Shown: positions 7,297-62,542 of the stretch, one piece after another
How positions within the stretch are numbered: the first letter of the stretch is position 1
Layout: every line of letters begins with the position of its first letter
Source of the DNA: Paramoeba atlantica
Taxonomy: Eukaryota; Protista; Discosea
Direction of reading: 5' to 3'
DNA: 64,000 bases
Assembly: GCA_977017575.1 (NCBI GenBank)
Contig: CDRNVI010000041.1
Span: forward strand, 248,001 to 312,000
Made by a program: the position numbers and the translations under genes
Notes under the pieces: generated by a model
The model's input: the letters and a program-made list of their open reading frames with translations, nothing else
Told to the model about the DNA's origin: nothing
Databases searched by the model: none

Positions 7297-7956
7297 TAAT
7301 AGTTCACGTTTTGAAATTCAGCCGAGGGGCGGCTATATATTTGCCTGCTGGCCCTTCGGGGCACATAATTTAACGATAAAGATACAGTGTCTGTACCTTG
7401 CTGGTTGTTATTTTGTTACGTTTAAAGTTTTGTGTATGAGATCCCAACGTTTACGGGCTCCGTCGGAGCCACGCCAGGAGCGCGATAGATCACCGAAGCG
7501 GAATAGGGCGCCGACACTCATTCAGACCTCCTCCGTCCAAGACCATTCTAAGCGTCAGTCCCTTTCGTGCCCTCCCGTGCGCGTCCCTCTCCCCCCTCTC
7601 CCCACGCAGCCGGCTCCGCAGGTATCCGCGCGACCTCCTCCGATTCCCCCTACTCCTGTCCCAGCGCGCCGAAAGGTACGCCCTTCTGGTAGAGCACTCA
7701 GCCCCGCCCGAGAACCGCCTAGCCCTCTCCCTTCCAACCTTGGCCGAGGGTTCCGGTGGGGGGGAACCCCTTTAACAGAGTGACATTGATTGTGCTGTTT
7801 TATGCAGGCTTGTTTCTTTTCCATCTTTGTGCGTGTGAAATGAATGAATGATATGTTGTGTCATTTTGAATTACGATTGAGCTATTCATAGTTGTTCATT
7901 TATTCATATATGTTATCAGTGTATATGTTTCCAGGGAGCCCCTCGACGTGGATTTC
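7297..7956 (+). mobile_element. 660-bp internally deleted mini YR retrotransposon (family Y) with both termini and an SL copy
   Basis: 5' hairpin module as at 50870; SL at 7369-7403; gag start MRSQRLRAP at 7436, matching 51048 up to ~7742; right terminus as at 2868-2886. No TSD compared with the empty site at 26705/26706. Confidence 0.85.
7369..7403 (+). ncRNA. Spliced-leader-derived sequence (nt 4-38, two substitutions)
   Basis: TTTAACGATAAAGATACAGTGTCTGTACCTTGCTG. Confidence 0.8.
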
Positions 7957-8812
7957 GTTATTGAATTCCAGATGCCCTACGTTTCCTTTTTCGAGCACAC
8001 GTCCCGTCTTCTTTGTGGTTCTTTATAGCTTGGGCCCACCTATTTCTGTTCTGGGCCATCGTCTTCCACAGTTGTGGTGGTATTCCTGACCTTTCACACG
8101 CTTTTTCTACGGCTTGAACGTAAGGAGGATTTGTGCATGGTAAGCGGTGGTGCATTAGTATCCCGAATAGCGTCTTATTAGGGTGCCGATGTTCATCCAT
8201 ACGAGCTACGTGCCCTGCATAGCTGAGAATTCTTGGGTCATAAAGCAGTTGAGTAGGCTCTTTGCCTATATCCTTGAACGTTACTCCCACTTCCTGTGCG
8301 CGCTTATCCACAAAATCCTTATATTTTTCGGTTTGTTCAATTGTACTTTTTTTTTTGTTTTCGTACGTCCCACTTGGGGATTAGCATCCCACACGGGAAA
8401 AAAGCAGAAAAGGCCGGATTAAAACTCAAATCAGAATTTTGAGGTGTAGCATACTTCTTATTCTACATATAAATGCTTCAATTACTTTCACAAGTTCTCA
8501 TTATCGTATGATGATGATGTATATTTATACGAAGATTTTTTTTTTTTGGGTGTGCACCCCCCTAGGCCCACCGGAAGCCTACCCACTTTTCATATGGATT
8601 TTCATCATATAAAAATCCATTTCTAAAGAAAATCCATTTCTAAAGAAAATACCTTTCTTTCTTAAGCAAAAAGGAAATTTGTCCATTTAATAGCCCTCAG
8701 AGTTTAGTGTCCTGTATCTGTGCCCATGTTGTCGTTGTTGGGTCCTGTATTTGTGCCCATGTTGAATAATACGAGATAGACTTGACTTTGGAGACTAGAA
8801 GATTATTCGGCT

Positions 8813-10073
8813 TCAAAGGCTTATGCCACCTAGCCATTTTTCACCCTGTATGTGGTTCCGCAATTGCGATACGATAGTGTAAGCCGCAAACTTTTCATTT
8901 TCCAATTGAAAAGCTTCACGTATAACTTTTGGGTCAGAATCGGCTCGTTTTGCAAGGGCTTTGATCAAGACCTTGGTATCTTCATGTAACATTCCACAAT
9001 CCGTTAAAGCGATGCAACGAAAATACTCTGGTTCTAACCCCTTCTCTACAACGTATTTCCGATGTTTTCTTTCTACGGCACTCTCTAACAGGGCTTTTCT
9101 GGTCTGTTTCTGGTAACTGCTGCATAGTGTGTGGACAACTGTGACATCATATAGAACTTCTCCAATATCTGGCCACATTATCGCCAGATCGTATACGACG
9201 AGCTCGGCATGGGTGCCTCTCTGCTGCTTCTGGTGATATGGAGCACTTGCACTTTGTGCAGAAAAACGAGGAATACAGACGCGGTTCCACGGCACATGGT
9301 AGGCCTGCTTTCCCACACAGATTTGATAGGTATCTCACAATGTGTGAGTGCTTTCTTGTGCAATTCATTCCGGCACATTTCGAGCATCCGGCGACATGAG
9401 GAATTATACCAATCGGCGATTCACTGATCCCACAGCCTGGGCAAGAGATTTTACTTGAAGCATTAGGCAGTCCAATAGCTAATCTCATCTTGAGTGTTTG
9501 CTGAAATAAGTACGGGTTTACATAATTGTTTGTCGAGAGTAGATGATAATTCGCTTCTTTGGAACGTTTTATAACCCCACTGAAACGAGGATTCGATTTC
9601 AGCTCCGCTGCTAGCTTTTCGTGCTCACTATTTGCCATTTTTTTCATTGCAGTACGTGCGCATTGTGATCCCGTTGTCCTCATACCTTTTCGTTGCTTCT
9701 CAAGTTTTTCTACCGGAGCTTCATGTGGTTTGAATTGCTCATCGATAGATTGACGAGAAGCGTCAAAGAGGTAACGATGTTTTAGGATCGTTGAGGTTAT
9801 TCCCAGTCCTCCCATTTTGCATGGCAAAGAAGCGAGTGTTAGAGCATCTTCGTCAGCGTCACACCATTTCACTAAGACCTGCCGGATCTCCTTATCGAAT
9901 TCCTGTGCTAGAAGAAGGGAAGCTCCCGGTTTGTGTACTCGCAAGTGATAATCATGACGTGGTAATGTACAGCGTTTGAGAATTGCTAGTGAGAGATTGC
10001 TTGGGCCCATGCGACTGAGTCTTCGAAACAAACAGTTGTGTTTTTCTAATTTTTCAAGGAGCATGCGTTCTAT
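8813..10073 (-). pseudogene. CRE family-1 RT C-terminus/RLE fragment, frameshifted
   Basis: MGPSNLSLAILKRC, LPCKMGGLG, CPGC..H..C, YDVTVVH. Confidence 0.88.
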
Positions 10074-10109
10074 CTTTAACGATAAAGATACAGTTTCTGT
10101 ACCTTGTTG
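10074..10109 (+). ncRNA. Spliced-leader-derived sequence (nt 3-38)
   Basis: CTTTAACGATAAAGATACAGTTTCTGTACCTTGTTG, about 30 nt before ATG GGC ATG (MGMFTRSRAK). Confidence 0.85.
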
Positions 10110-12414: not shown

Positions 12415-12430
12415 TTTCTGTACCTTGTTG
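12415..12430 (+). ncRNA. Spliced-leader 3' half (nt 23-38)
   Basis: TTTCTGTACCTTGTTG at the 5' end of a nested element, before ATG 12465. Confidence 0.7.
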
Positions 12431-14990
12431 CCTTGTTGTTTTTTTTTATTGAGATTACTTAAACATGTTCGCTCGTCAAGCGAGATTTGGAAAACACTTC
12501 ACGGACGACATCGGGGCGACATCGGGAAATTTTCTGCAAGCTACCCGGAAGGATGATTGTAGCGAAGGACGCTGTAGCGCTTCTCCGAACACCAGAATCA
12601 CCGAGCCGAGCTACAATAAAAGTGAGACCGCACCGAAACCCAAGAAGACACCACGAATTAGGGTTATCAGTCAAAGCACAGGAAAAGACATTTCTCCAAT
12701 TTGGGCTGACCACGAAATTCATGATCAAGTGGAAGCGAAGAATTCGAATCTCATCAAGTTGAAGAGATACACGATGCGAAACAGAATTGAACGAGGAAAT
12801 ATCGATATAGAAACTTCGGAAAATGATGAATCGAACGCCTCAAAGTCCGAAGACGAAAAAGCGTCACAATCAGATTCTATGTCGACAGACGGTGAAGAAA
12901 ACAAGAGCAACCCATGTTTCGCAAAAGCCCCTGACCAAGTCCAACAAATTATTAGAGAATGGGGCAAAGGTACGACTTGCGAGGTGCGATGGGGATTTAG
13001 CAGGAATAAAGAGATGTATCACTCCGTTGGCGAAGTCGTAAAAAGATCCTCACGGAAAGGAATGGTAAAGATTCAGATTTCTTATAAGGAGGGGAAAGGA
13101 GAGGGTCCACAAGGTATCCTACACTTACCGCCGTAAGACAGAATTAAAATATGGTCGCTAAGTGCTGTTAAGCTGAATAAGATAAAGGCGATTGGGAATT
13201 TCCTGGACGAGAAGAATGAAGATCAAGACGAAGAAGAAGAAAGCGCCGAGAATAACCAAGACTATGAACCTCTACCGACATTCGTTCAAATCGATCCATC
13301 ATTTGCAGTTCATGTAGTAGCCATCTTCCGATCCATTGTACGAGACTACCCTAAAACCATTTTAGAATCAGAGAAAACTTCCATATGGCACAAATTACTG
13401 GATGCTCCAATGGATTCGCTGGCCACAGTTCGTCTCACTTTGAAAAGAAAACAGAGTTCAGCCCACCGCCGTAGACACCGCGAGCTCTTAGACGACCAAA
13501 ATCTGAGTGAAGAACAACGTCAAGAACTTGCAATCGATCAGCGGTCAATAAGAAACGCACTGACAGCAGCAAAAGCAGGAAATTTGAGTAAAGCAACACG
13601 GATTTTGGACAATGTATACCGAGAGTCATCTCTAGAACCGCATGAGAAAGTTTTCAAGTTGAAAGAGCTCCATCCTACAGGACCCACCCCCAAACGTTTA
13701 GAAGAAGATTTTCCACGAATTGGGGTAGTTGAGCAATCAGAGCTTCGGGTGGCAACAGAAAAACTATCTCGAGGAGCAGCGCCGGGACCAACAGGCTTCA
13801 GCGAAAGCATGATGCGACTTTTAGTGGAAGATGAGGAATCCTGCCTAGCGCTTTGCCACATGTTTCGTGACGTCATAAATGGTGATGTGGCAGAAAGCGT
13901 GCGTAAACGACTGACACTCTGCAGAATAATTGCTCTAGCAAAGCCGCAAAACGGCATACGACCAGTTGCAATGGGCGACACAATTCTAAAAATATGCGGT
14001 TCGATTCTCTTAAACAGACACGAAAGCTCCCTCAAAACCCTTTTCCAGCCAATCCAACGGGGTATTCTACAAGAAAGAGCCTGTGAGTCAATAGTGCATG
14101 AGTTGTTAGAGGAACGAAAAGACGGATACACTATACTCACAGTTGATTTCAAGAATGCTTATAATACGCCACATCGTACGGAAATAGCGAAATCACTGCT
14201 TAAGGAGCCGATCTTTAAACACTTCATGCGGCTTTTTTATCTAGAATATGGCCAGCCTTCCGAACTCCTTTTCTTCGCCAATAATGCATTACACTCGATT
14301 ATAGAAAGTTCTTCAGGAGTAAGACAGGGATCAGCACTTTCATCGCTCTATTTTTGCTCTCTCCTGCAACAACCTTTGAAGGAGGTCTCCAAAAATTATC
14401 CCGAAGTAAAAATTCGAGCGTACCAAGACGACGTTACAATGAGCTCAAAGAATGTAAAGTCACTGGAGGCAGCTTTTCATCATTTACGTGAACTTACCCA
14501 GGATTTGAATTTACATATAAATTACGGAAAATGCGAGTGGTTCCGAAACACAAACGAAGTATTAAATAAAACCAACCTCAAGGAGCTTGGAGTCACAACA
14601 TGCGAACATTCCATCAAAGTGTTAGGTGGATACATAGGAAGTGCGAAAGTTGTGGAACATAAACTGATTGAAAAGCTGAGTAAACATGAATGCCTTTTTC
14701 GTCGTCTACGGGTGATGGGGCCAAGTAACCTGTCGCTAGCAATCCTGCGTCGGTGTACTCTTCCACGTCACGATTATCATCTTAGAGTGCACGTTCCAGA
14801 GGCAACGTTTTCCCTCGCTGAGGTATTTGATAAAGAAATCCACAAAGTGTTGAGACGATGGTGCAATGCAGATGATGAAGCCCTCCGACTAGCTTCTCTA
14901 CCATGTAAGATGGGCGGCTTAGGCATAACATCGACGATATTGAAGCAACGCTATCTTTTTGCGATTTCCCGTAAATCTATTGATGAGCAA

Positions 14991-17061
14991 CCCAGATTGA
15001 AAGGGGCGAGGGAGATACGAAGCAACAGGCGTGGCAGATTCCCACTGAAAAGAAATGGTATCTCCCGCACGAAGTTTGTCTCCGAGCTAGAAAGCGCAAA
15101 GGCTTTTCTCGTGCGGGGAGATACCATTTCTTTTCAGTGGGAATCTGCCACGCCTGTTGCTTCGTATCTCCCTCGACCCTTTCAATCTGGGTTATACGGC
15201 GGGCCTTTCGAGGCGGTGCAGACCCGCTGGCGCGGGTGGTGCTTTACCTCGTGACAAGTAATCTTGAAGGAAACAAGCTTCTGAAATCTTTTTTTTGAAG
15301 GGCCCGCCCGGCTAACATTTTGCCTCTGGGAGGTCTATGTTCGATTCTACTTACGTCTTGTTTATGTTAAGCATTGAGCCCTTTATGTTGTACTTTAATA
15401 ATGAAAAAGTGCACCTATGAGCACGTTCACTGGCTCAGTGAGACGGAACCGAGGTTCCCCCAACACTTACACCAGTTCGTGCATACGGAACATTTCGTTC
15501 GTTGACAGTTCTTTATGTATCTCTGCTTGTTTAGCCAACAGGCATTAAGCTCAGACACCACGTCAAGGCGAGAGATAATTGTCTGAGGACCCTCTTCTCA
15601 CGAAGAAGGTATTCAAAATGAATGTGATTTTCGTATCAATTTACTCTAATTTCTTTTCTATGTTCCACTGTACATTTCTTGTTCCACTGTATTTCTTGTT
15701 CTTCGCTCTTTCGCCCATACCGCTTCTACCGATTCCCGGCTGACGATCTGAGCAAGTTCCGTACGAGACAGTTCAGACTGTGGTCACCCTTCCACAACAT
15801 GGCCAGCTGGCCACCCTTCCACAACATGGCCAGCTGGCCACCCTTCCACAACATGGCCAGCTGACCACTCTTCCACAACACTCTCCCACCCCCGTGGGAC
15901 TCACTCAGTGGCCTCACTCAACGTGAGTCACTGCCCCACGTGGCAGTGCTCTGACTCTCTCACGTGCCACTGTAGGTACAGTGCCGATGCAGTCACTACC
16001 TTACGTGGCAGTACTCTCACTCTCTCACGTGCTACTGCAGCTGCACTGCATCACTGCAGTCACTGCCTCACGTGGCACTTCCTGTCACTCTGCCACTGTA
16101 TCTACACTGCAATCACTGCCTCACGTGGCAGTACACTTACTCTCTCACGTGCTACTGCAGCTGCACTGCATCACTGCAGTCACTTCCTCACGTGGCAGTA
16201 ATCTTACTCTCTCACGTGCCACTGTAGCTACACTGCAGTCACTGACTCTCTCACATTCCACTGTATCTACACTGCATTCACTGCCTCACGTGGCAGTAAT
16301 CTTACTCTCGCACGTGCCGCTGCAGCTGCGCTGCAGTCACTGACTCTCTCACATTCCACTGTATCTACACTGCATTCACTGCCTCACGTGGCAGTAATCT
16401 TACTCTCGCACGTGCCGCTGCAGCTGCGCTGCATCACTGCAGTCACTGCCTCACATAGCAGTGCACTTACTCTGGCACGTGCCACTGCAGCTGCACTGCA
16501 TCACTGTGCAATCACTGCCTCACGTGGCACTGCTCTCACTCTCTCAAGGTCCACTGTAGCTACACACTGTACCACTCGGACCTGCACATTATTTTTCTCT
16601 CTATATATATACAAAATGCAAACCGTGTTTTTGGTGGCCAGCTGGCCACTTTTTTCAAGAAAAAAAAATCTGAAAAAAAAATCGTTCCGAATTTGTTTTT
16701 TTCGCGATTTTGAGCATATAATTTTTTTTGTTCAAAAATGTCGATGCCGGGAATCGAACCGCGGACATCCAGCGTGAAAATGGAACCCCTTTACCAACTG
16801 GAGTACTCAAAGGACTCTCCTTAGTCAACCAGTTTGTCGTATCGCAGACCTTTGCAGACGCACTTTTTTTTACCAAAAGTGTTCTACAATTTGGGAAATG
16901 AGGTCGTTGTAGATGATTTTTCGAGTATTAAAGAGTTCATCTAATGAGCTACTGCTACGTTTTAAAATTTTGAAAAAACTGGATCTCTCGCTTCTTTGAG
17001 GGGCATTTTCAAGTTTTGGAATTAACCTTAGTAAGCGAGTTAGATACTCCGTATCTCCCTC
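14991..17061 (+). mobile_element. Non-autonomous element family B, copy 2
   Basis: Same termini and AA flanks as B1. Hairpin at 14991-15191; extra ~590-bp segment; 27-bp repeat x3-4 (15788-15880); minisatellite ~15915-16580. Confidence 0.8.
16736..16810 (-). promoter_or_regulatory. tRNA-derived A/B-box unit inside element B2
   Basis: TACTCCAGTTGG...GGTTCGATTCC...TTTTT, homologous to 4688-4762. Confidence 0.6.
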
Positions 17062-25758: not shown

Positions 25759-25844
25759 TGCACATACAAATGCACCACAAATATTTCCATCCACGTGTTT
25801 CATGCACTACGATAAATTACCAGGATTAAATGCTCAGCCAGCTT

Positions 25845-25970
25845 TGTAAGACCTTTCCTTATTGTAAGACCTTTCCTTATTGTAAGACCTTTCCTTATTT
25901 TAAGACCTTTCCTTATTGTAAGACCTTTCCTTATTGTAAGACCTTTCCTTATTGTAAGACCTTTCCTTAT
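25845..25970. repeat. 18-bp tandem repeat x7 (TGTAAGACCTTTCCTTAT)
   Basis: Seven units counted, one variant. The same unit occurs at 24737-24758. Confidence 0.9.
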
Positions 25971-32332: not shown

Positions 32333-32450
32333 GAGTACAACACTCAGGGTTCCCGAGCGATCGCTCACCTCAGTACTAACTGAGCCTGACGGTGCTTAAC
32401 TTCACAAAGCGAACGGGATGTGGTGTTTTCACCGTAGTATGGTCGTACCC
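32333..32450 (-). rRNA. 5S: 5S rRNA gene, kinetoplastid-type
   Basis: GGGTACGACCATAC...GAAGTTAAGC...AGTTAGTACTGAGG...CTCGGGAACCCTGAGTGTTGTACTC (118 nt), followed by a TTTTT terminator. Confidence 0.93.
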
Positions 32451-32582
32451 GGCGTAACTTGTGAAATCCCCACTATGAAAGAAATATTTTCCACGACAAT
32501 CTGCCTCATCCTGAGTGTCCCACAGAGGCGCTACTCACCATGTTTACGCTAGCGCAGTGGCTTCCGGGGTTTTTATCATTCG

Positions 32583-32746
32583 AAAAGGTCACACGGGCTG
32601 AGGATCGAACCTCCGTGCAAGTGTTTTGACATTCAGCACATGGCTACAGTTTGCCACGTGTTGCGAAAATTGACGGGGCGGGAATCGAACCAGGAGTTTG
32701 GTCCGTCAGCCTCCGAAAAGCACGCCCTGCCACTAGACAAGTTTCC
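32583..32746 (-). promoter_or_regulatory. Two tandem tRNA-like A/B-box units upstream of the 5S gene
   Basis: B boxes GGTTCGATTCC and GGTTCGATCCT, each followed by TTTT; A-box-like TGTCTAGTGG. Cloverleafs incomplete. Confidence 0.55.
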
Positions 32747-32839
32747 AGGCTGCATTTTGGGCTAAGACTCGTGGAACAACAAGTTCATCAGTTTGACAAA
32801 AGCGAACAATGAGCTCTGGTGGTTGGTAAAGCCCTTGTT

Positions 32840-32877
32840 AACTTTAACGATAAAGATACAGTTTCTGTACCTTGTTG
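32840..32877 (+). ncRNA. Complete 38-nt spliced-leader exon-like sequence (no GT donor follows)
   Basis: AACTTTAACGATAAAGATACAGTTTCTGTACCTTGTTG: AACT start, conserved CAGTTTCTGTAC, TTG end. Confidence 0.85.
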
Positions 32878-39960: not shown

Positions 39961-39967
39961 CCAAGGA

Positions 39968-42499: not shown

Positions 42500-42539
42500 G
42501 CCTCTACTGACAGTCCTATTTCAGCACGAAGACGCCATG

Positions 42540-42790
42540 GTATCCAGGACGGGTGCTGGTCGGGTCGACAGAGTCTATGCTCACGCCTAGCCCGCGAGGG
42601 CTAGGTACCCCAAGTGAGGTATTACACGGGCAGTGAATCTCCTCCCCGTCGGCCAGCATCCTGTTTCGCGACCGTGTCGCTGTCGACACAGGCCCGCGCC
42701 TGCGCCCTCCCATATAGCAAGGGAAGGGTTCACAAGTCAGGCCGTGGAGTGGTCGAAAGACCAGGTCCGGAACGCGCGAATGGATTGGGT
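42540..42790 (+). other. Conserved structured 3' UTR RNA of CRE family 2
   Basis: Homologous to 62115-62370; long-range 12-bp helix and GNRA-capped hairpins. Confidence 0.65.
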
Positions 42791-43186
42791 CTGTATTGCT
42801 TGTTTTAGTTTTTACTGTTTCTTGTTTGTAGTATATACTTAGGGGAGATTAAATTGCTAGTTTTGGGCTGAGAAAAAACAAAAGGTACATCTGTGGAAAC
42901 AAAAAGAATTGCTAATTTGATTGCTTGTTTTAAATTCATATACCCCCCCCAATGGACCTGCTATGTACTTGGTTAAAAAAAAAAAAAGCAATATAAAAAG
43001 CATAAAAACAATATAAAATTGCTAATTTGATTGCTTTTTTTCAACTCGTAAAAAAAAAAAAAAAGATATTTTATGTATAAAATGGTTTTCTATAGACGCA
43101 AATTAAGAAAATTTCATGTTGGAGTTTCTTGAACACACAACATTCTATAAATTGAATTTAAGAAACTACGACTATTCCGCCATCCT

Positions 43187-43984: not shown

Positions 43985-44155
43985 CGGGACCTCGGGGCCG
44001 GACGACCCCTGACACGGTACGGCTGCTCGGGAGGCCGCACCGTAGAGACGATAACCACGGAATTCCCTGGTCCCGGCCAGGTCCCGATCAGAGAAAATTA
44101 TTTAGGTCACAATATAAGGTTAAAAAACATAAATTATCTCGAGCTTCCAGAAGAT

Positions 44156-50869: not shown

Positions 50870-51047
50870 TAATAGTCCACGTTTTGAAATTTAGCCGATG
50901 GGCTGTTATGTATTTGCCTGCTGGCCCTTCGGGGCACATAATTTCTTCAAATTATGATTTGTGTTCTATAATTACATGGATTGGATATTCTACTATTTCT
51001 TATATATCCTTGTTAGGTTGTTAGTCGTACTACGTTTAAGTTTTTGT

Positions 51048-52451
51048 ATGAGATCCCAACGATTGCGGGCTCCGTCGGAGCCACGACAGGAGCGCGATAG
51101 ATCACCGAAGCGGAATAGGGCGCCGACACCCATTCAGACCTCCTCTTTCCAAGACCATTCCAAGCGTCAGTCCCTTTCGTGCCCTCCCGTGCGCCCCCCT
51201 CTCCCTCATCTCCCCACGCAGCCGGCTCCGCAGGTATCCGCGCGACCTCCTCCGATTCCCCCTACTCCTGTCCCAGCGCGCCGAAAGGTACGCCCTTCAG
51301 GAAGAGCACTCAGCCCCGCCCGCGAACCGCCTAGCCCTCTCCCTTCCAACCTTCCCAGTTTGCCTGCGAGCTCCCTCCCTAGCCCGTACCCATTTCCGCT
51401 GGAGGCTCCCGAGCCCCATATGCGACGAAGAGGAACCCTTAACCCTGACCAGGTTGAGGCTTCTCGCTCGCCGCGCCGTTACGAGGCCCTTGACATTGAC
51501 CACGTCGAGTTGCCGCAGCGTTCACGCTGTGATGCGCGTGGGATCATGACACAATCCAGCAAAGAAGAGTTCATCACGAAAGTGATTGAGCTTCTGCGCA
51601 AGGACTACGAGGTCACTGTCGAGGCTGTATGGTCCCTTCCCCGTGACGGCCTACGGCAGACGGTTATAGGGTTGGTGCATATGACGCATCCAAAGGACCC
51701 TAACTCAACTGAGTTGTTCGCCGAGTGGGATGGGGACAAGAACACTGCCTATCGTTTTCCCCATCCCGAGATCAACTACCACTCTTTGGAACTGTCTCAT
51801 GTTCGGGCGCAGATGCCGGGTGGGAAACCAGTTGAAGATCTGATCCCCACGTTTGAACGCGTCCGTATTACGGACCCGAAAGGCTTCTCCCCCTACGATC
51901 CGGTTACTTGGCAACCGTGGATCGACACGGATGATTTGTTCAAGCCACGTGAACTCATCCGTGAGCTGCGCGAAGCTCCGCAGCTTGGGGTACGCTTCAA
52001 CCCGCCGCCGCAGCGTGAGCGCCTGTTCAAAATGTTAACTGAATGGGTTTACGCTGCGTGTAATACGGAGGGATGGCTAGAGAAGCACAACCTCGCCGTA
52101 GCCCTTCTCATCATCGAAGAGCTTCGCAACCATTATTGGGCTGCGGCGGGCGTTGCTGTCGAGCGTGTGCAACAGCGGTTGCACCGTGACGACGACCCTC
52201 AGGACCGCTATGGTCAGCTTGTTGTGGACGAGCAACTGAGGGGCCGAACCGCTCAGCGTGCTCCCCGCCGACGAACCCAGGCGCCATATTGCTTCGCGTG
52301 CCACCACTCTGGCCACTTCCGCTCAAACTGTCCCCAATCATCTCAACACCAAGGGGGACAGTTCCGCAGCCAACGAACCCCAGCCCAGGATTTTCGAGGC
52401 GGGGTGGTGGGCGGCGCCAACCGTTACGGCGCAACACGGGCTTTCCACTAG
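51048..52451 (+). CDS. gag-like ORF1 of family Y with CCHC zinc knuckle
   Basis: CFACHHSGHFRSNC; the start matches the mini element. Confidence 0.85.
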   Translation: MRSQRLRAPSEPRQERDRSPKRNRAPTPIQTSSFQDHSKRQSLSCPPVRPPLPHLPTQPAPQVSARPPPIPPTPVPARRKVRPSGRALSPAREPPSPLPSNLPSLPASSLPSPYPFPLEAPEPHMRRRGTLNPDQVEASRSPRRYEALDIDHVELPQRSRCDARGIMTQSSKEEFITKVIELLRKDYEVTVEAVWSLPRDGLRQTVIGLVHMTHPKDPNSTELFAEWDGDKNTAYRFPHPEINYHSLELSHVRAQMPGGKPVEDLIPTFERVRITDPKGFSPYDPVTWQPWIDTDDLFKPRELIRELREAPQLGVRFNPPPQRERLFKMLTEWVYAACNTEGWLEKHNLAVALLIIEELRNHYWAAAGVAVERVQQRLHRDDDPQDRYGQLVVDEQLRGRTAQRAPRRRTQAPYCFACHHSGHFRSNCPQSSQHQGGQFRSQRTPAQDFRGGVVGGANRYGATRAFH

Positions 52452-52454
52452 GAA

Positions 52455-53725
52455 ATGCCCCCCACCCCAATTACTGCTCGTGCCCGTCTTCCCAGGCGAC
52501 GACGGGTGGATATTCTTACCCCTGTTTCCTCCCCGTCTCTCCGCCAGCGCGAAAGACGGCCACGCGTGCGTGGCACTACTCCTCCTCCCCGCCCTCTCTC
52601 CCCGTTACGTCTAAGGCGCAGAAGCGTCTCCCTCCCAATCCGTCCTCTACCCCGGCTTCCCGTTCCCGTTTACGCCGCCGCCAAGACGGCCGCCGCCAAA
52701 ACCGCCGCCGTCGTAACCGCCGACGCCGCACAGCCGCCAGGGAGACGCCGCCAGGAGTTGCTGAGGGCGATTCTTCGAATGCCCCCCGAGGACCCACGCG
52801 CCACCCAGATGAACGAGGCGCTCCAGCCCATGTGGGCGACGGCCACGTGGGCCACAAGGGAGCGTTTATGGTTCCGCCTGCGCGAGTATTGCCAGGCGAA
52901 GGGAATCACCGCGAATCCTGCAAACGCGGTGCTCTTCCTAGAGACTCTGCCTCTCGCTACCTCGACGCGCATGGGGTACGCAGGGGCATTGAGGACTCTG
53001 TTCGAGCTCATGGGAATCGAAGGTACCCCATTGAGTCTCTACGTAAAGGCCCTGCAGGCGCAGGGGGGGGCTAGAACCCACGCGGCAGATGCTACCAATC
53101 ACGCCACTTCTTCTAAAGAAGCTGAGACGTCACCTCGACGTAAAGGAGAGCATGTGTTGCCTCCTGTGTTGGAAAGCCGCTGCGAGATGGACCGAGACCG
53201 CCGACCTGAGGCGGGAGCAGCTTGTGAGTGTGGCCAGTCACGAGGTAGTCATTTATTGGGGCAGGGGGACCAAGACAACCCGTATGAATCTAATAGTCCA
53301 CGTTTGGAAATTTAGCCGCGGGGCAGGGAGTTGTTTATGCCTGCTTGGCCCTTCGGGGCACATAATTTCTTCAAATTATGATTTGTTTCAAATAGTGTTG
53401 TAATTTCATTATTCATTCTTTATATTCTTGGTAGGCTATTTTTTCTACTTACCGGCCGTACCTCTACGCGAGAGTGACTGGCCCCGGAACGCCCGAACTG
53501 GCTCAGTTTGTGGGAAGTATGAGACCAGGCCAACGCCTGTCTTACACGACGGTCCGGGAGATGGACCACAGGATGAATCAACTTCTCGGTCCCGGATATG
53601 GAGCACATTCCATAAAAAGAGGTGCGATTACTTACCTATTCCACGAGATCTCCCTCGGGAATCTCAGGATGGAGGACGTCCAGAACCTCACGAAACACCT
53701 CAACGTCGAATCACCAGTGCTGTAA
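52455..53725 (+). pseudogene. Tyrosine recombinase of family Y (extra G in the run at 53063-53070, 157-bp insertion, catalytic Tyr codon is TAA)
   Basis: AARWTET, GTKTT, AHSIKRG, LTKHLNVESPVL*. Confidence 0.85.
53291..53447 (+). mobile_element. 157-bp solo copy of the family-Y 5' module inserted in the YR gene
   Basis: Homologous to 50870-51020; removal restores TTRMN-P-YRPYLYARVTGPG. Confidence 0.75.
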
Positions 53726-54909
53726 CCTCGGAGCACGTGGCAAAGTGCTTCGAGGAAGTGCCTTACCTTCGCAGGCACTCCGTTGTTTGTGCACGCCGCT
53801 CTTCACGGCTAGCCAAGGCACACGACGCACACCTACCTTTGCACGTTAAGAAGTCGATACCTGTTATCCATTTGGATCAGGTTAAGGAGTGGATGAGTAT
53901 GTCAGCTGCCACTCGTTTTCGCAAGGTAGTGGATGAATTATTATGGGTACCTAAAGCCCCGTACCCCGAACCTAGTGTGAAAGGTTCATTGCCTGAGGCG
54001 GACGTCCGATTGTTGGAGGACGCAGGCATAATCTCTAAGGTCCCGGCGCAGGAGTTGAGAAAGCGCCCATCGATGCAGTTCACGATTCCCTTCACGGTTG
54101 TGGAGACCGATGATGAGGGCAATCAGCGCAGAAGATTTATTTCATGGACAAGGGACGATAACGATAGATTAAAATCATATGAACCAAAGGTCCCATTATA
54201 TCATCCCTCCAAGTATCTTCATAAGGCGCACGAGCCGATGGCTGTGAAGCGGGACTTCACATGCGGGTTTTACCAGATTGGTATCCCGAAGAGTGCGCGG
54301 CCCAAATTCCGCCTTAGAACGACCAGTGGAGACGTGTATGAGATGAACGTCCTCCCGATGGGCCATAGGTGTGCACCGGAGGTTATGCACACGGTTACCG
54401 CCGCGATTGCTGGCGAGGCGTCGATTTGTTCTCAGCGCTCCTCGTTTTTTTTCTTTTTTTTTGGATTTTTGGACTCGTTTCACCGAGGCGCTATCGACGT
54501 TTATGTTGACGGAGTTCGGTTTGCAGGAACCGACTCCGAGGCCACCACGTACGCTCAGTTCATTGACGAGCGTTGCGACAAAGCGAACGGTCTTTTCAAA
54601 GATCGGGGTCAGCCCCCTGTAGCACAGTACGTGTTCAATGGGGTGGCGTTCGACCATAACGCGCATACGGTCTGCCTGGGGCCGCGAGTGATCAGGAAAC
54701 TGCGAGCCGACTCTTTCTTCAACATTTCCTTTGTTGACCTAGAGGCGGTGGTGGGGCGCCTCATTTATGGCTCCGCAGTTCTCCGACTCAATATGCCGCG
54801 ATTTTATTTCGCTTTAAAGGTGGCGCAACGGCGTATCAACTTGTTGATATCAGAGAGAAGACCACTTTTTGTATTAAGACCACTTTTTGTATTAATACGT
54901 TGGTACAAA

Positions 54910-57900
54910 ATGGCGGAGGCCTCCGGACCGTTCGAAAGTGTGTTGGAAGTCTGTGGCAAACTTCGGACGGCCAGGTGTGGTCGGGGCAACCTTTTTCTGC
55001 CTCCACAGCAGAGGGGGGTTGGGACAAAACTCCGGCAGCGGGCCCTTTTACAGATGTCAAAGGTTTTGGCTGTGGGAAAACACGTGGCTGTTGTTTGGTG
55101 TATGGCTTATAACGAACGTATTACACTCTGGGAAGGGGTGGTTCACTCATCGCTTGATGGGTCTGGTTGGCTCGTCAAGTACGACTTGATGAATGGGCGA
55201 CTTCTCCCGTTTCCTCCGAGAGATGATCGTATCCATGTGCTAGGCGGCAGAGTTGGACTGCTTCCAAAATCTTTGCGCAAACGTAATCGGAAACGCAAAT
55301 CCTGCTTTCGGCGTGGCTACCGAGAGCAGAGACCCAAGATCAAAGCTATGAGAGAGGGGTTTGCAGTAAGCACCATGAATGTAGATACTTTAAAGTGTAA
55401 AACCACAGACGAGTTTGCTCTACGTAAATGTTTCCGTTTGCATCAAGCTGTAGAGTTCATGCGAAGTTACGGCGTAACAATAATGGCCTTGCAGGAAACG
55501 CGACTATCGTTCAAGAGCGAGGAACCGATCATTCATCGTAGGCTCTATCTGGCTGGCATTAGTGTTAATATATATATTATGAGTGCAATAAAGGGCTATA
55601 ACGGAATGGCAATGCTGAGTCTGCAACCCATGGGTGTTGAAAAGATCAATGATCGCATTATGAAAGGAACAATACATATTGGAAAGATGAAGGCGTGTAT
55701 ATTTAATGTTTACTCCCCGACGGCTGGTGCAAAGAAAGAGAAGCAAGAATCGTTTGATGAGGAGCTATTTGATGCTTGGCATGATTCCCAATGTTCGCTA
55801 AAGCTAATATGCGGAGACATGAACGCACCTTTGCAAGATCCAAACGGCAGAAAATGTTGTTCGGAAAGAGCGCAAGAATTTCGCAAATTTTTGGTAACCC
55901 TTGGATCTAAATCGGCTCATCAATGTTGCAGCGCAGAAAGAAAGTGGACTTATAGGTTTCCACCTACGCCGAAACACCCTGATGGTCTAACAAAACAGCT
56001 TGATCATATCATAATAAATTCCCGTTTCAGCTCAGCATTTCGGTATCAGAAGGTGCTTTTGGCTCCCATACCTACGAGACACTGTGCAGTAATAGCAGGA
56101 TTAAATATAAAATGGAGAGTGGCATGCAAACCTGGTAAGTTACAACCGTTTTGGGGATCCTTGAGAAACGAAACCATATGTGATACATTCGTGAAAAATG
56201 TGGAGGAGTCAATTCAGGGGGGAAATAAACGGTCACGAGAAGGGTCAATTGGCCCCGCTTTATGGGATAAGCTATCGTCCGCAGTCAACTCCGCCGCAGA
56301 GAAATTACCCAGGAAAATTGCCAATATTGGAAAAGCTCCTGACTCGGAAACTGACTCGCATTCCCTTGATATGAAAACTATTGTGCAAATTGCTCGAAAT
56401 CGAAGGACTTTCGATACCTTTGCTCGAGAACACGGAAAAATGATTGAAGAATGCGTGAAAGAAGAATGTGAAGTGATCCAAGAAAAGCTATATAAATGTC
56501 CAAAAAGCGCGTATCAAGCAATTCGCTATATTGTAGGGGAAAATCGAAAAGTATTCTCCATGTTTGGTGAAAATGTTCGAGACAGTATGTGCAGAGTGAG
56601 AGGACATTTTCAGGCGATAGGTAACCAATTAGATCAAATTTCCGAACCGGTAAACTTCCCTAACTGTAATAAAAGCTTAATTGGTATTGAGGATACGGAA
56701 TTTACCCCAAAGGAGCTCAGAATTTCTCTGCAAAAAGTCAAATCTGGAAAAGCTTCAGGCTCCGACAACATTCCTATTGAGGCTCTCTCTACATTGGCTC
56801 AGAGGGAAGAAGCACTTGGCATGCTCTTGAACATAATAAATGAAGTAATGTGTATCGGTGCCGCGGCGGATAAATGGAAGATGATTCTGCAAGTGCCACT
56901 TCCAAAGAAAGGGAATCTCAATGATCTTACAAATTGGAGACCGATATGCATTGTAAACCATGTGGTAAAGGTAATGAACCGGATGGTACTAGAGCGTATA
57001 CAACCAGCCGTTGAGAATATGCTTCGCTCAAATCAGTTTGGATTTCGCCCGCACCGATCCACTGCCGGCGCACAGGCAACTTTCGTGGAAATAGCTACTA
57101 AAGCTTCGAGGGGAGAAGGTGTTGCGGTAGCGTTTGTTGACTTTAAGCAGGCATTTCCTTCCGTTACTTTCTCTGCAATACGAGATGCGCTGAGAGCATT
57201 CCACATACCGGAAAATATTACTAAAGTTATTATGAGCATGTATGAAGGCCTGAAATCTTATGTGAGGACGCCTCATGGTGACACCGAATCGTTTTCTATT
57301 GAAAATGGTACTCTACAAGGGGATGTGCTCGCGCCATATCTCTTTATTATGGTCCTCGACAGGATTATGGCAGAGGCCATTGACGCGAAGGGGTTGGGTG
57401 TCATTGCTTATTCCACCGGGACGAAGAGTCGCGGCGAAAAGCACCTCCGAATTTCTGATGTGGCATATGCAGATGACGTAGTTCTCTTCGCTTCTTCTAG
57501 GTCTGAACTCTCCGAAATGCTAGAAAACCTGTGCAAGTATGCAAAGAGGGCAAACCTTCAGGTAAATCTGGGCAAAAACAAGACCGCATGGATGGTTCTA
57601 GGAAAAATTGATGACATGACAGCTCCCCTTCTAGTCCCAAGTGTTGGAGAAATCCCCCGAGTATACAAATATAAATATCTTGGAAGTACACAAGAGAATG
57701 AAAATCGTCATGTAGCCCCACAAGAACGCATTCGTCTAGGATGGGCCACAATGCATAAACTTCATGCGATATGGAACTCACCAATTCAAGTCGCAAGTCG
57801 GTTAAAAATATTTCGAACACTTGTTATGCCTGTTATTAATTACAACTGCGGCACGTGGAATATTTCATCGAATCAAATGAGCGAATTGGACGTACAAGTC

Positions 57901-59211
57901 AGCAAAATGCGAAGATGGGTATGCGGAGTAGGGAAAAGATGGAAAACGGGAAAGTGCATTCGTCTTGAATCTCTTTATCAAGATGACTTGAAACTCAGCA
58001 CAACATCAAAAATACAACGTGCTCAACTTATTGGCCATCTCGTTCGACATGAATCGCCGTTTAGCCTAGCCATTCTGTGGCGCGTGCAAGACAAATCATC
58101 ATATCCTTCGATCTCTGAATTATGCGCAAAAGATTTAAATCTTTCAATAGAAGAAGTCATACATTCGTCTCGGGACCGCGCCTTATGGAGGTCAAGCGTT
58201 GATCGACTACGAAATCGGATCGAACCACGCCCTGATTATGTACCCATCGAAGCAAAATCATGGGAAAAACGAGCAATGGTTGCACGAAAAGAGAGTCAAT
58301 ATAAATCACTACAATTCGTCGAAGAAGGCGCATTGCCATTCCCAAATATTTCTCCAGCCGTACACATGTATACTGATGGCTCTCTTAAAACAACGAAATC
58401 GAAAGTTACTTCTGGATGCGGAATCGTGTGGTGGGGGGATGGTGTTGAGAAGTCCTTAATGGGAGTACGACCTCCAACGGATATTGAGCTCACCATAACT
58501 GCGGTAGAGCTCTATGCCGTATATGAGGCACTGAATCTTGCGGCACATTATGGGCAGGACATTGTATTACACACAGACTCAAAATACGTATGGGAATTCT
58601 TCCACATTATAAGGCATCGATTTTGCATAGTTGGGTTTCAATTATTCCAGAGCGCACAACTACTCAAGAAGATACAACTTTTGTGTTCTAAGATCGAGCA
58701 AAATAGCAATGTATATTGCATCAAAACCAGAGGGCATGAAGGAAACCCGCACAACGCAACCTCAGACTGGCTCGCTAAACGAGCTTGCACACATCAAGAC
58801 GAAAACCCTTCCTTTACTTACCGCGGTTTTGATATCGTGACCAATGAAAAGAGGAAAGGTAACGAAATTCAAAACAATATGAAAAAGAACAAAAACAAAA
58901 ATACGAAATTACCAGAGTTTGCGCACACACCTATCGAAATGTCTCCTACGCACTCTATAAGCACGAAAAATAAAGGTAACCTGATAAATGAAAAGGGGAA
59001 ACGATCAAGATCCAAGAACAAGCGTGAAAATACGAATACGCACAGCAACCAAAAAGCACGAAAAACTGATGGAAAGAGGAGTACGAATGCATATTCACCA
59101 GGATTAGCAGAGGTAACTTTAGCAAGAAAGCATCCACAAAGAAAGCGAGCTAATTATGAAGAGGAGTGCAAGAGAACTCGAAAGGGGGGGAGCTCTTCTT
59201 CTAAAACGTGA
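54910..59211 (+). CDS. Intact single-ORF APE-RT-RNase H non-LTR retrotransposon (RTE-group/ingi-like layout), 1433 aa
   Basis: APE: MNVDTL, ALQETR, NVYSPT, CGDMNA, LDHI. RT: QFGFRPHRST, VDFKQAF, LQGDVLAPYLF, YADD. RNase H: YTDGS, VELYAV, TDSKY, GHEGNPHNATSD. Confidence 0.92.
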   Translation: MAEASGPFESVLEVCGKLRTARCGRGNLFLPPQQRGVGTKLRQRALLQMSKVLAVGKHVAVVWCMAYNERITLWEGVVHSSLDGSGWLVKYDLMNGRLLPFPPRDDRIHVLGGRVGLLPKSLRKRNRKRKSCFRRGYREQRPKIKAMREGFAVSTMNVDTLKCKTTDEFALRKCFRLHQAVEFMRSYGVTIMALQETRLSFKSEEPIIHRRLYLAGISVNIYIMSAIKGYNGMAMLSLQPMGVEKINDRIMKGTIHIGKMKACIFNVYSPTAGAKKEKQESFDEELFDAWHDSQCSLKLICGDMNAPLQDPNGRKCCSERAQEFRKFLVTLGSKSAHQCCSAERKWTYRFPPTPKHPDGLTKQLDHIIINSRFSSAFRYQKVLLAPIPTRHCAVIAGLNIKWRVACKPGKLQPFWGSLRNETICDTFVKNVEESIQGGNKRSREGSIGPALWDKLSSAVNSAAEKLPRKIANIGKAPDSETDSHSLDMKTIVQIARNRRTFDTFAREHGKMIEECVKEECEVIQEKLYKCPKSAYQAIRYIVGENRKVFSMFGENVRDSMCRVRGHFQAIGNQLDQISEPVNFPNCNKSLIGIEDTEFTPKELRISLQKVKSGKASGSDNIPIEALSTLAQREEALGMLLNIINEVMCIGAAADKWKMILQVPLPKKGNLNDLTNWRPICIVNHVVKVMNRMVLERIQPAVENMLRSNQFGFRPHRSTAGAQATFVEIATKASRGEGVAVAFVDFKQAFPSVTFSAIRDALRAFHIPENITKVIMSMYEGLKSYVRTPHGDTESFSIENGTLQGDVLAPYLFIMVLDRIMAEAIDAKGLGVIAYSTGTKSRGEKHLRISDVAYADDVVLFASSRSELSEMLENLCKYAKRANLQVNLGKNKTAWMVLGKIDDMTAPLLVPSVGEIPRVYKYKYLGSTQENENRHVAPQERIRLGWATMHKLHAIWNSPIQVASRLKIFRTLVMPVINYNCGTWNISSNQMSELDVQVSKMRRWVCGVGKRWKTGKCIRLESLYQDDLKLSTTSKIQRAQLIGHLVRHESPFSLAILWRVQDKSSYPSISELCAKDLNLSIEEVIHSSRDRALWRSSVDRLRNRIEPRPDYVPIEAKSWEKRAMVARKESQYKSLQFVEEGALPFPNISPAVHMYTDGSLKTTKSKVTSGCGIVWWGDGVEKSLMGVRPPTDIELTITAVELYAVYEALNLAAHYGQDIVLHTDSKYVWEFFHIIRHRFCIVGFQLFQSAQLLKKIQLLCSKIEQNSNVYCIKTRGHEGNPHNATSDWLAKRACTHQDENPSFTYRGFDIVTNEKRKGNEIQNNMKKNKNKNTKLPEFAHTPIEMSPTHSISTKNKGNLINEKGKRSRSKNKRENTNTHSNQKARKTDGKRSTNAYSPGLAEVTLARKHPQRKRANYEEECKRTRKGGSSSSKT

Positions 59212-59688: not shown

Positions 59689-61385
59689 CCAGTGCTGTAA
59701 CCTCGGAGCACGTGGCAAAGTGCTTCGAGGAAGTGCCTTACCTTCGCAGGCACTCCGTTGTTTGTGCACGCCGCTCTTCACGGCTAGCCAAGGCACACGA
59801 CGCTCACCTACCTTTGCACGTTAAGAAGTCGATACCTGTTATCCATATGGATCAGGTTAAGGAGTGGATGAGTCTGTCAGCTGCCACTCGTTTTCGCAAG
59901 GTAGTGGATGAATTATTATGGGTACCTAAAGCCCCGTACCCCGAACCTAGTGTGAAAGGTTCATTGCCTGAGGCGGACGTCCGATTGTTGGAGGACGCAG
60001 GCATAATCTCTAAGGTCCCGGCGCAGGAGTTGAGAAAGCGCCCATCGATGCAGTTCATGATTCCCTTCACGGTTGTGGAGACCGATGATGAGGGCAATCA
60101 GCGCAGAAGATTTATTTCATGGACAAGGGACGATAACGATAGATTAAAATCATATGAACCAAAGGTCCCATTATATCATCCCTCCAAGTATCTTCATAAG
60201 GCGCACGAGCCGATGGCTGTGAAGCGGGACTTCACATGCGGGTTTTACCAGATTGGTATCCCGAAGAGGGCGCGGCCCAAATTCCGCCTTAGAACGACCA
60301 GTGGAGACGTGTATGAGATGAACGTCCTCCCGATGGGCCATAGGTGTGCACCGGAGGTTATGCACACGGTTACCGCCGCGATTGCTGGCGAGGCGTCGAT
60401 TTGTTCTCAGCGCTACTCGTTTCACCGAGGCGCTATCGACGTTTATGTTGACGGAGTTCGGTTTGCAGGAACCGACTCCGAGGCCACCACGTACGCTCAG
60501 TTCATTGACGAGCGTTGCGACAAAGCGAACGGTCTTTTCAAAGATCGGGGTCAGCCCCCTGTAGCACAGTACGTGTTCAATGGGGTGGCGTTCGACCATA
60601 ACGCGCATACGGTCTGCCTGGGGCCGCGAGTGATCAGGAAACTGCGAGCCGACTCTTTCTTCAACATTTCCTTTGTTGACCTAGAGGCGGTGGTGGGGCG
60701 CCTCATTTATGGCTCCGCAGTTCTCCGACTCAATATGCCGCGATTTTATTTCGCTTTGAAGGTGGCGCAACGGCGTATCAACTTGTTGAACCGTTGCCCG
60801 AAGTTATGTGACCGTCCGGTCGCACTCCCTGTCGTCACTCGCTCCATGCTAGCAGAGTGGAGAAACGAGTTGTTGGAGAATGTTCCACGGTCTCCACCTC
60901 CCCATCCCGATGTTGTTCCACACAAGCATCGTCTCTACACCGATGCCTCGGTGAAAGGATGGGGAGCGATTATGTATTTAGACAGCGGAGAGGTTTTGAT
61001 TACGGGAGAGGCGTGGCCTGAGTCATCCTCGTATGAGGTGAATCGTGCGGAAGCTGCAGCAGTCCGCTTAGCCCTCGAGAAGTTTTCCGCGCATTGCCCC
61101 CGTGGAACCTGCTTGGATGTTTTTGTTGATAACACCTCCTGTCAGGCTGCACTGAACAGGATGATCTCCAAGTCAGAGGGGGTTTCAATGGAATTGCGCG
61201 AAGTCCTGCGACTGACAGAGGAGAAAGGTATTTGTGTGAAGGCAGCGTATATATCCACGGATGAGAACCCGGCGGATGCTGTCGGTCGCGGGAAGGAGAT
61301 TGAGATGGAGAAGGTCGAGAGATACGAAGGTAAGATCGAGAGAGACATTAGTAAGGTAGGCAGTCATATTCAGAGAAAGCCCTAA
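59689..61385 (+). CDS. Family-Y RT-RNase H (duplicates 53714-54847, then continues to a complete RNase H)
   Basis: KRDFTCGFYQI, LPMGHRCAP, YVDG, LYTDAS, NRAEAAA, VDNTS, ENPADAVGR. Confidence 0.88.
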
Positions 61386-61478
61386 GGGACAGGATCACCA
61401 AATACAAAAAAAAACAAGCCAAGAAAAAAAGAAAAAAAAACAAAGAGACAAAAAAAAACAAAAAAGACAAACACAAAA

Positions 61479-62506
61479 GGGGACCACGCATTGTCTTGCA
61501 AGCACGACGGAATTATCGCGAGGCACAATGCCGTGGCAGATCACTTCACGGACCTTTGCAGCAGAGCCAAACTGGCCCCACAACGGGAGAAAAGTCTTGG
61601 TAACAGAGGCCCAGGGGGTGCCCTCACCAGACCTGGCGACGTATACCTGCGCAGTCTTTTCTTGGGGAATCCCATCGTGCTTGACTTCGCGGTCACCCAT
61701 GCTCAGCAACTAAAATATACGGACAAAGTCCGGAACGCTAGCTGGGTAACCGCGGGGTCGTTTGCCGAGCAATATTCCTCCATGGAGAAGGGTAGGCAGC
61801 GCCGGGAAGCCGTTGACGCCGGGTGTGACTTTACGGCCATGGTGGTCGAAAGCTATGGCGCCTGGAGCCCCAGTGCTTCAGCAGTGATCCGCAAAGTTGG
61901 GGAACGTCTCTCACATGCCTCGTGTGGGTTATTGACAGAGGGGGAAGCCACGAGCAGAATCTTTACGGAGCTGAACGTCACCCTCATGCGCCTTCAGGCG
62001 CGCATGATGGTTACTCGTTTACTTCCTGAGGATCCGCTCTCTCCTACGGAGGTGTAAACGTTCGTAAACGTCGACCGCGCCCCTTTTGGCACGGGAACAC
62101 GTTTGCGCCCATGAAGAGCTGGTCGGGATGCTGGTCGAGTCGACAGAGTCTATACTCACGCCTAGCCCGCGAGGGCTAGGTACCTCAAGTGAGGTAGTAC
62201 ACGGGTAGTGAATCTCCTCCCCGTCGGCCAGCATCCTGTTTCGTGACCGTGTCGCTGCCGACACAGGCCCGCGCCTGCGCCCTCCCATATAACAAGGGGG
62301 AAGGGTTTACAAGTCAGGCCGTGGAGAGGTCGAAAGACCCGGTCCGGAACGCTCGAATGGATTGGGAATGGATTGCTTGTTTTTATTGTTATTGTTTTTA
62401 TTGTTCTTATACTTACGGGAGATCGAATTGCTAGTTTTGGGCTCCAAAATATGAAATTGCTAATTTGATTGCTTGTTTAAAAAGACAAAAAAAAAAAAAA
62501 AAAAAA
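61479..62506 (+). pseudogene. 5'-truncated CRE family-2 copy: RLE C-terminus (to 62057), structured 3' UTR, poly(A)
   Basis: GIIARHNAVA, RPGD..LDFAVTH; UTR homologous to 42540-42920. Confidence 0.88.
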
Positions 62507-62542
62507 CTTTAACGATAAAGATACAGTTTCTGTACCTTGTTG
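62505..62542 (+). ncRNA. Spliced-leader sequence directly after a poly(A) tail (nt 1-2 ambiguous with the tail)
   Basis: (A)n-CTTTAACGATAAAGATACAGTTTCTGTACCTTGTTG. Confidence 0.85.

Follow-up and report, generated by a model that had tools for sequence, protein, structure and literature searches.

A stretch of 64,000 nucleotides (nt) from the Paramoeba atlantica assembly GCA_977017575.1 (contig CDRNVI010000041.1, positions 248,001 to 312,000 of the forward strand), referred to below as the window, carries one 38-nt sequence, whole or as its 3′ part, ahead of the open reading frames (ORFs) of several unrelated retrotransposons, raising the question of what this sequence is and how it came to head such different elements. 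An initial annotation took the 38-mer for the spliced leader (SL) of the organism and proposed that the elements are trans-spliced and re-integrate with the leader as their 5′ end. The analysis reported here identified the 38-mer as the organism's true SL exon, and more than 1,000 retrotransposon copies were found to begin with a DNA copy of it (hereafter, an SL tag). Standing at the start of an element, such a tag indicates that the sequence was copied back from capped, leader-bearing RNA.

Identity of the leader and its genes

In a genome-wide search of the 45.7-Mb assembly, approximately 34–38 canonical SL RNA genes were found outside the window (34 promoter-plus-exon sites and 38 exon-plus-intron sites), each comprising a promoter, the 38-nt exon and an intron beginning with GT, with a 5S rRNA gene linked to it. 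In these units, the 38-mer is preceded by a fixed sequence and followed by GTATGAG..., and the units are arranged in tandem arrays together with the 5S rRNA gene. The complete set of features of a bona fide SL RNA gene, namely promoter, 38-nt exon, GT intron with stem-loops and tandem arrangement, was found in C3, C11, C24, C74, C97 and C107. The start AAC is encoded in all 34 genes that have a promoter, and the RNA formed by exon and intron folds into three stem-loops (z = -6.4). Furthermore, one contig of the probable RNA run X5 has SL nt 3–38 joined, precisely at the exon end, to unrelated sequence that does not belong to a transposable element (TE). Taken together, the gene arrays, the fold and the X5 contig contradict the possibility that the real leader is a different sequence, and the identification proposed in the initial annotation was thus confirmed. 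The genome is of the kinetoplastid type.

SL and 5S genes are linked in every array seen. Four exon-plus-intron sites lack the canonical promoter (G000:C6:27072, C83:133012, C87:74375 and C87:106933) and may be retrocopies of SL RNA or SL genes disrupted upstream. At G000:C25:199062-199109, on the minus strand, poly(A) and TT are followed by the start of the SL intron, the exon being absent; the site is the 3′ junction of an element located where exon and intron of an SL gene meet, or else a retrocopy of the free SL intron. Inside the spacer of an SL array on G000:C74, at unit position 375, lie L054 and L055, where the element is headed by just the last 7–9 nt of the SL.

SL tags in the window and across the genome

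Seven SL copies are present in the window (Table 1), each ending in ...CCTTGTTG and followed, 28–50 nt further on, by an ATG, while the sequence behind the copy varies from one to the next and is the SL intron in none of the seven. A 13-mer taken from the motif's 3′ half (TTTCTGTACCTTG), with up to two mismatches allowed, gave seven matches against 1.69 expected, a count reached in 0 of 100 shuffles, and a 32-mer of the motif gave four matches in the window against 0 expected. Both counts exceed expectation and a chance origin was rejected, in agreement with the seven intron-less occurrences originally described ahead of ATGs. Their placement at the 5′ ends of elements also holds generally, with two departures: the copy at 7369 sits 72 nt inside its element, and the copy at 32840 is the exon of a genuine SL gene. 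The leading AA of the copy at 62505 is indistinguishable from the upstream poly(A). An eighth remnant of 11 nt is possibly present at 27290–27280 on the minus strand.

Across the genome, the last 20 nt of the SL gave 877 matches, and additional tags start at nt 21 (n = 34), 22 (n = 47), 23 (n = 114) and 24 (n = 56), summing to 251. After removal of about 38 genes, approximately 1,100 SL tags are left. In an unbiased sample of 30 matches, nearly all were tags located 22–50 nt upstream of an ATG, with repeated TE-like ORFs behind them. In a small, unbiased sample of ten tagged ORFs, no host gene was recognised, and only reverse transcriptase (RT), LsmAD-like or no Pfam matches were obtained. The tags are carried by long interspersed nuclear elements (LINEs) with a restriction-like endonuclease (RLE) and by an element of the tyrosine-recombinase (YR) type, so the earlier claim that several retroelement orders are involved was well founded.

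The tag as part of the retrotransposed unit

In the window, a copy of LINE F is interrupted by LINE G, the borders of which were set by comparing the interrupted F with three uninterrupted F copies. The SL tag of G (34193) is enclosed by a 7-bp target-site duplication (TSD), CCAAGGA (34186–34192 and 39961–39967), and the F|G junction at 34192/34193 is spanned by a contig of the independent DNA run X2. Eleven of 13 other F copies start right after the poly(A) tail of an unrelated element, as does LINE K at 62505, with 0–5 odd bases between the two, and the tags end exactly at the exon border. The SL tag, lying within the TSD and abutting the tails of unrelated elements, belongs to the retrotransposed unit and travels with it, as had been supposed.

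Copies of F are 99% identical, yet the bases before CTTTAACG vary among them (AT, GAT, GACT, GGGGT, TGTAT and others), and in about 20 independent, unambiguous heads nt 2 is T in 14, C in four and the A of the gene in just four. Since the first bases vary among copies so closely alike, the template RNA must have ended at SL nt 1 in every round. Difficulty in copying the first bases of the template, combined with untemplated additions, would fit a capped, hypermodified SL 5′ end, and the clustering of 5′ ends at nt 1–4 with non-gene bases at nt 1–2 is consistent with the suggestion, made in the initial annotation, that RT may stall at the cap. The SL itself is perfect across F subfamilies that are just 72–76% identical beside it.

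Trans-splicing in the tyrosine-recombinase family

Comparison of the filled and empty sites of the short YR copy in the window (Table 1) revealed neither TSD nor poly(A), and its 5′ 445 nt match a full-length YR element at 50870. By eye, the latter has a CCHC knuckle in its gag-like ORF, a recombinase-like N-terminal region and a DIRS-type RT with a YVDG motif. A Pfam search of its ORFs returned no match and the YR catalytic residues R..HxxR..Y were not located by eye, this copy being interrupted by a LINE of the apurinic/apyrimidinic endonuclease (APE) type.

In its standard form, the family has an SL-less 5′ end (at least 40 scored of 229 candidates, many 99–100% identical), consisting of a pyrimidine tract followed by ...CCTTGTTAG|GTTGTTA, whereas the SL-bearing copies, i.e. 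the one at 7369 and at least eight others that start at the SL (96–98% identity), read SL|GTTGTTA. The SL stands exactly in place of the tract and AG of the SL-less form, and this establishes trans-splicing at the pyrimidine-tract/AG acceptor in the YR family. The initial proposal that the elements are trans-spliced was therefore upheld for this family; for F, K and G′ it was not upheld as a step of each cycle, the junction being present in every copy. In the window YR copy, the SL lies behind the element's own 5′ module, an arrangement that would be expected if circular or template-switching replication rebuilds the 5′ end. Neither the YR 5′ module nor the rest of the window gave an Rfam match to a ribozyme, even at E = 1.

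At 53428–59211 on the plus strand lies a chimeric ORF of 1,927 amino acids, in which the reading frame of the YR element's DIRS-type RT continues into an inserted APE-RT-RNase H LINE; part of this ORF is present again, as a 96.6% copy, at 59689–60789. The start of the YR 5′ module, TAATAGTCCACG, occurs at 50870 and again 2.4 kb downstream at 53291; this recurrence may reflect a direct repeat that was split, or else a second copy beginning there.

LINE families and their leaders

LINE F has a single long ORF with an LsmAD-like motif, C2H2 zinc fingers, RT, CCHC and RLE, and its best solved relatives are R2 proteins (best PDB matches 8gh6 and 9nl3). A weak LsmAD-like motif (Pfam PF06741, E 2e-5 to 3e-3) is found in the N-termini of F (from 32924) and K (from 62593) and of the L006, L016 and L024 families. 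In G′, copies that are 99% identical begin at SL nt 26–36, and families C and E, including relatives of E at 73–75% identity, consistently begin at nt 22–24. Leaders of the G type are not conserved; a genome search with leader patterns of the G subfamily matched the window copy alone and was uninformative.

Start points and stacked relics

Besides the cluster at the leader's first bases, 5′ ends accumulate at SL nt 23, directly after an AG (114, against about 14 at nt 22, 34 at nt 21 and 56 at nt 24), an excess due in part to tandem duplicates and a T-run. Stacked relics, in which an SL 3′ end is preceded by a further SL end, were recognised as SL 3′ end plus nt 23–38 in 14 exact copies genome-wide, and TG precedes nt 23 in up to about 33 copies. 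The 14 stacked relics imply that DNA-encoded tags undergo occasional re-splicing at their internal AG, followed by another round of retro-copying. At L007, L010, L025 and L029, partial SL pieces in direct or inverted orientation lie just upstream of full tags, which points to template switching at the RNA 5′ end.

An SL gene promoter running into LINE F

Upstream of the copy at 32840 lie 925 bp of an SL gene unit, and the copy is accordingly a genuine SL-gene exon, not a retro-copied tag. The left border of the unit fragment adjoins the poly(A) tail (31888–31914) of another element, as ordinary F insertions do; no tRNA genes were found in the fragment. Against the units of the C3 mini-array, 4 of 963 positions differ (0.42%), a value similar to the private divergence of F (0.37%). 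In a four-copy comparison, the window F copy showed 16 private substitutions and grouped with one other copy, and the presence of at least three F variant groups rules it out as the only source of F. Among the 34 promoter-linked exons, 32840 is the only one that lacks the intron and has an element behind it, the other 33 having kept their intron. Three origins fit the arrangement: recombination or homology joining between F and an SL gene, a retrocopy of read-through RNA from an F copy in an SL array, or an RT switch through the SL onto an SL-array transcript. The contigs of the read runs were built from short words and break inside the 38-nt repeat, which places the junction of promoter, SL and F beyond their reach.

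Table 1. Coordinates of SL copies, retroelements and SL gene sequence within the window.
Feature	Position	Strand	Description
Non-autonomous YR (VIPER/DIRS-like) copy	7297-7956	+	660 bp; empty site 26705/26706 in a 99.3% identical repeat
SL nt 4-38	7369-7403	+	Two substitutions; 72 nt inside the YR element; joined to leader GTTGTTA...
SL nt 3-38	10074-10109	+	Heads RLE-type LINE G′, ORF from 10138; upstream bases unique
SL nt 23-38	12415-12430	+	With stacked 8-nt relic CCTTGTTG (12431-12438); heads LINE family C
LINE family C	ORF 12465, RT 13410-15254	+	R2/L1-like RT; family members begin at SL nt 22-24 or at the 8-nt relic
SL nt 23-38	25758-25743	-	Heads family E, ATG at 25710
SL RNA gene unit fragment, promoter side	31915-32839	+	925 bp, 99.6% identical to unit positions 530-1454
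5S rRNA gene	32332-32450	-	Complete, 99 bits; inside the SL-unit fragment
SL nt 1-38	32840-32877	+	Genuine gene exon in register with the promoter; LINE F leader replaces the intron
LINE F, 5′ part	32878-34192	+	Leader AATTATTTTC..., ATG 32924, N-terminal LsmAD-like motif, C2H2 zinc fingers
SL nt 19-38	34193-34212	+	Heads LINE G
LINE G, inserted in F	34193-39960	+	SL nt 19-38, Pro-rich ORF1, RT, CCHC and RLE C-terminus; tandem-repeat end without poly(A)
LINE F, 3′ part	39968-42945	+	RT, CCHC and RLE motifs, poly(A) tail
Full-length YR element, 5′ part	50870-53315	+	Standard SL-less form: 72-nt 5′ module, pyrimidine tract, acceptor AG 51015-51016, gag-like ORF, recombinase-like ORF
SL nt 1-38	62505-62542	+	Heads LINE K, right after the poly(A) tail (62487-62504) of an F-like element
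LINE K	ATG 62593	+	Leader AATTATTTTTCC...; shares the N-terminal motif of F

Origin of the tags

The dispersed tags probably preserve in DNA the 5′ ends of retroelement RNAs bearing the capped SL, the RT having run to the cap, or nearly to it, and the cDNA having been integrated with the SL attached. In the YR family, the SL was added by ordinary trans-splicing at the pyrimidine-tract/AG acceptor. In the RLE-type LINEs F, K and G′, and probably in C and E, the junction of SL and leader may also have originated by trans-splicing, as its position exactly on the exon border suggests; it would since have become a fixed, heritable and conserved 5′ module shared by all copies, although the 5′ terminus would still be re-made on capped RNA in each round. 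The leading candidate for the route by which a LINE RNA, without an AG acceptor, would come to start at SL nt 1 is a copy lying in register behind an SL RNA gene promoter, as at 32840; the SLACS, CZAR and CRE elements of trypanosomatids are transcribed from such promoters. We tentatively suggest, as one possibility, that several LINE families have taken over the host SL as a heritable 5′ module and would gain a capped SL 5′ end without trans-splicing, either by capturing an SL promoter through the 38-nt homology or by an internal start signal, and that 32840 would be a living intermediate towards the SL-gene-resident state of SLACS, CZAR and CRE.

Several observations weigh against the account of the tags as copies of capped, SL-bearing RNA 5′ ends. 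The leader of F is preceded by the SL in 14 of 14 genomic copies, to which a fifteenth with a 7-nt deletion at the junction can be added, and all 13 copies of K begin at SL nt 1–13. No SL-less source preceded by AG was found in the assembly for F, K or G′, and no F copy genome-wide is spliced at the pyrimidine tract and AG within F's own leader, so that standard trans-splicing of read-through RNA cannot remake the TTG|leader junction. The initial annotation had itself stated that a fixed TE 5′ sequence without an upstream AG acceptor would contradict its proposal, and this is what F, K and G′ possess, though not the YR family. The SL and the next 14–20 nt (AATTATTTT...) are 95–98% conserved across many otherwise unrelated families, which independent trans-splicing does not predict. 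F has at least three source variants at its ORF start, an element stands behind only one SL promoter in the whole genome, and run X5 provided no coverage of the F or G bodies.

Some of these points are better accommodated if the source copies reside in SL genes, at the exon/intron border, and are transcribed from +1 of the SL promoter, the dispersed tags being off-target progeny under a relaxed form of SLACS, CZAR and CRE biology. Promoter and exon at 31915–32877 do lead directly into F, the poly(A) at the left edge and the matching divergences fit a read-through retrocopy, and the absence of an AG acceptor, the uniform junction and the perfect SL would all be accounted for; the exon-less junction at C25:199062-199109 has the expected form, and the SL arrays lie on short contigs that are perhaps incompletely assembled. 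On the other hand, a single promoter-linked exon out of 34 has an element behind it and none such is found for K, G′, C or E, while F requires at least three sources and is without RNA coverage in X5; moreover, 32840 could equally have arisen by homologous recombination or by an RT template switch through the 38-nt SL. Residence in SL genes is a possible source of the tags, albeit a doubtful one. The conservation of the SL with its next 14–20 nt across families and the retention of the module in every F and K copy could also be read as mimicry, the encoded tag and pyrimidine-rich leader acting as an internal promoter from which RNA polymerase II starts at tag nt 1 wherever the element lies. 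Pr77, an internal promoter of this kind, binds SNAP50 and TBP, the factors of the SL gene promoter (PMC8190864). Such a promoter in the tag itself is nonetheless unlikely, as the leaders of the G type are not conserved and no RNA coverage was seen. The SL RNA gene promoters of trypanosomatids, moreover, are located upstream of the exon.

Less likely still is renewal by copy choice, in which RT working on read-through RNA would switch within the tag to an abundant SL-bearing cellular RNA and run off at its cap. RTs of the R2 type are known for template jumping, the partial, duplicated or inverted SL pieces upstream of the tags at L007, L010, L025 and L029 are in line with it, and 32840 could be a switch onto a read-through transcript of an SL array; but the switch would be needed in nearly every event, since 5′-extended copies are rare, and a homology of 38 nt is short for such efficiency. 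The most conventional explanation, that the SL sequences are merely the flanks of CRE-type elements inserted site-specifically in SL RNA genes, is very improbable as a general account. Elements of the CRE clade do insert in SL genes (PMC12278014) and one window copy has SL-gene DNA upstream, but an intron follows none of the seven tags, SL-gene DNA is missing upstream of six, tags lie within a TSD or after poly(A) tails with variable 5′ bases, and about 1,100 tags face about 35 genes. For six of the seven window copies, insertion into SL genes was ruled out by the absence of an SL-gene flank and of the intron and by the TSD enclosing the tag. Recording of capped RNA 5′ ends remains the preferred reading of the dispersed tags.

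Comparison with described systems

The nearest described process is the formation of DinoSL relics in dinoflagellate retrogenes (PMC6050394, PMC5585692, PMC12014239), where, likewise, a leader encoded in the DNA heads a retro-copied sequence and stops at the exon border, and where relics are similarly stacked by re-splicing at an AG in the encoded leader (14 cases here). The present cargo differs in consisting of retrotransposons, autonomous as well as non-autonomous, from at least two orders, with no host gene in a small sample; in addition, the organism is of the kinetoplastid type, most tags are single and full-length, and the LINE tags are inherited without an acceptor.

Among elements, the nearest described are SLACS, CZAR, CRE1 and CRE2, the CRE clade of trypanosomatids (PMC12278014), with which F would share a single ORF with N-terminal zinc fingers, RT, CCHC and RLE, and a poly(A) tail; G differs by a separate Pro-rich ORF1 and by a 3′ tandem repeat in place of poly(A). 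RT, CCHC and RLE motifs were read in the translations of both F and G, whose predicted motif architecture matches that of CRE-like elements. A further link to the SL is the one copy behind an SL RNA gene promoter, the RNA of which would start at SL +1. The site specificity of the clade for SL RNA genes was not observed, with 1 of 34 exons occupied, F mostly at poly(A) tracts and G in F with its own TSD. Classical CRE elements occupy one position inside the SL exon (nt 11/12 for SLACS) and have the first SL bases only, whereas the copies described here are dispersed, mostly at A-tracts, and carry the whole exon, joined at its end.

R2 elements are co-transcribed with a host gene, so that their RNA has host sequence, from 28S rRNA, at its 5′ end, and are characterised by a self-cleaving ribozyme and by end-to-end template jumping. 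The RT/RLE enzyme is related, host-derived sequence stands at the 5′ end of the element RNA in both, and the junctions of poly(A), a few extra bases and a 5′ end resemble those of template jumps; here, unlike in R2, no ribozyme was detected in Rfam and the host sequence is an mRNA leader. Pr77 of ingi and L1Tc is the element's own promoter and ribozyme, yielding unspliced RNA (PMC1874656, PMC8190864, PMC3185411). Like the tag, it is a short conserved 5′ module common to different kinetoplastid retroposon families and thought to secure a usable 5′ end, whereas the module here is the host SL itself and its promoter activity is putative. The YR family resembles VIPER and SIRE (PMC12278014) in its CCHC gag-like ORF, lack of TSD and short non-autonomous derivative, and would do so in its putative recombinase-like ORF and DIRS-type RT; it differs from them in that a minority of copies have the SL in their DNA, placed 72 nt inside the element where the trans-splice acceptor lies.

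No published report of SL-headed retrotransposons in kinetoplastids was found in full-text searches of the literature. New here are the in-register SL-promoter copy, the lack of an acceptor-bearing source for three LINE families, the pattern of misreads at nt 2, and the numbers obtained for relics and for start points. If the preferred reading is true, the leader common to all mRNAs of a trans-splicing organism also serves its mobile elements as a 5′ end of their own, which would solve in one step the problem of providing a LINE with a complete, translatable 5′ terminus. The tags would then be a natural record of RNA 5′ ends, in which the non-gene bases at nt 1–2 may report cap-adjacent modifications and the stacked relics show how often splicing and copying were repeated. 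The in-register copy would offer a concrete route by which CRE-type elements could become SL-gene specialists, and the approximately 1,100 sites would provide a simple genome-wide marker for dating and classifying retrotransposition in this lineage.

Additional repeats

A dispersed repeat (L031-L042, e.g. G000:C3:18104 and C4:128700), estimated at about 85 copies, runs from SL nt 10–16 to the exon end and continues with GTAC(A/T)TTTT... and a strong hairpin, its leader resembling that of F. L001-L004 (G000:C1:9752-25049) form a tandem array with a period of 5,093 bp, in which each unit has an SL tag between two identical 28-nt sequences. Within the window, tandem repeats are found at 28972–30359, with a period of about 178 bp, and at 25844–25970, where an 18-bp repeat occurs that is also present beside an F copy in L085.

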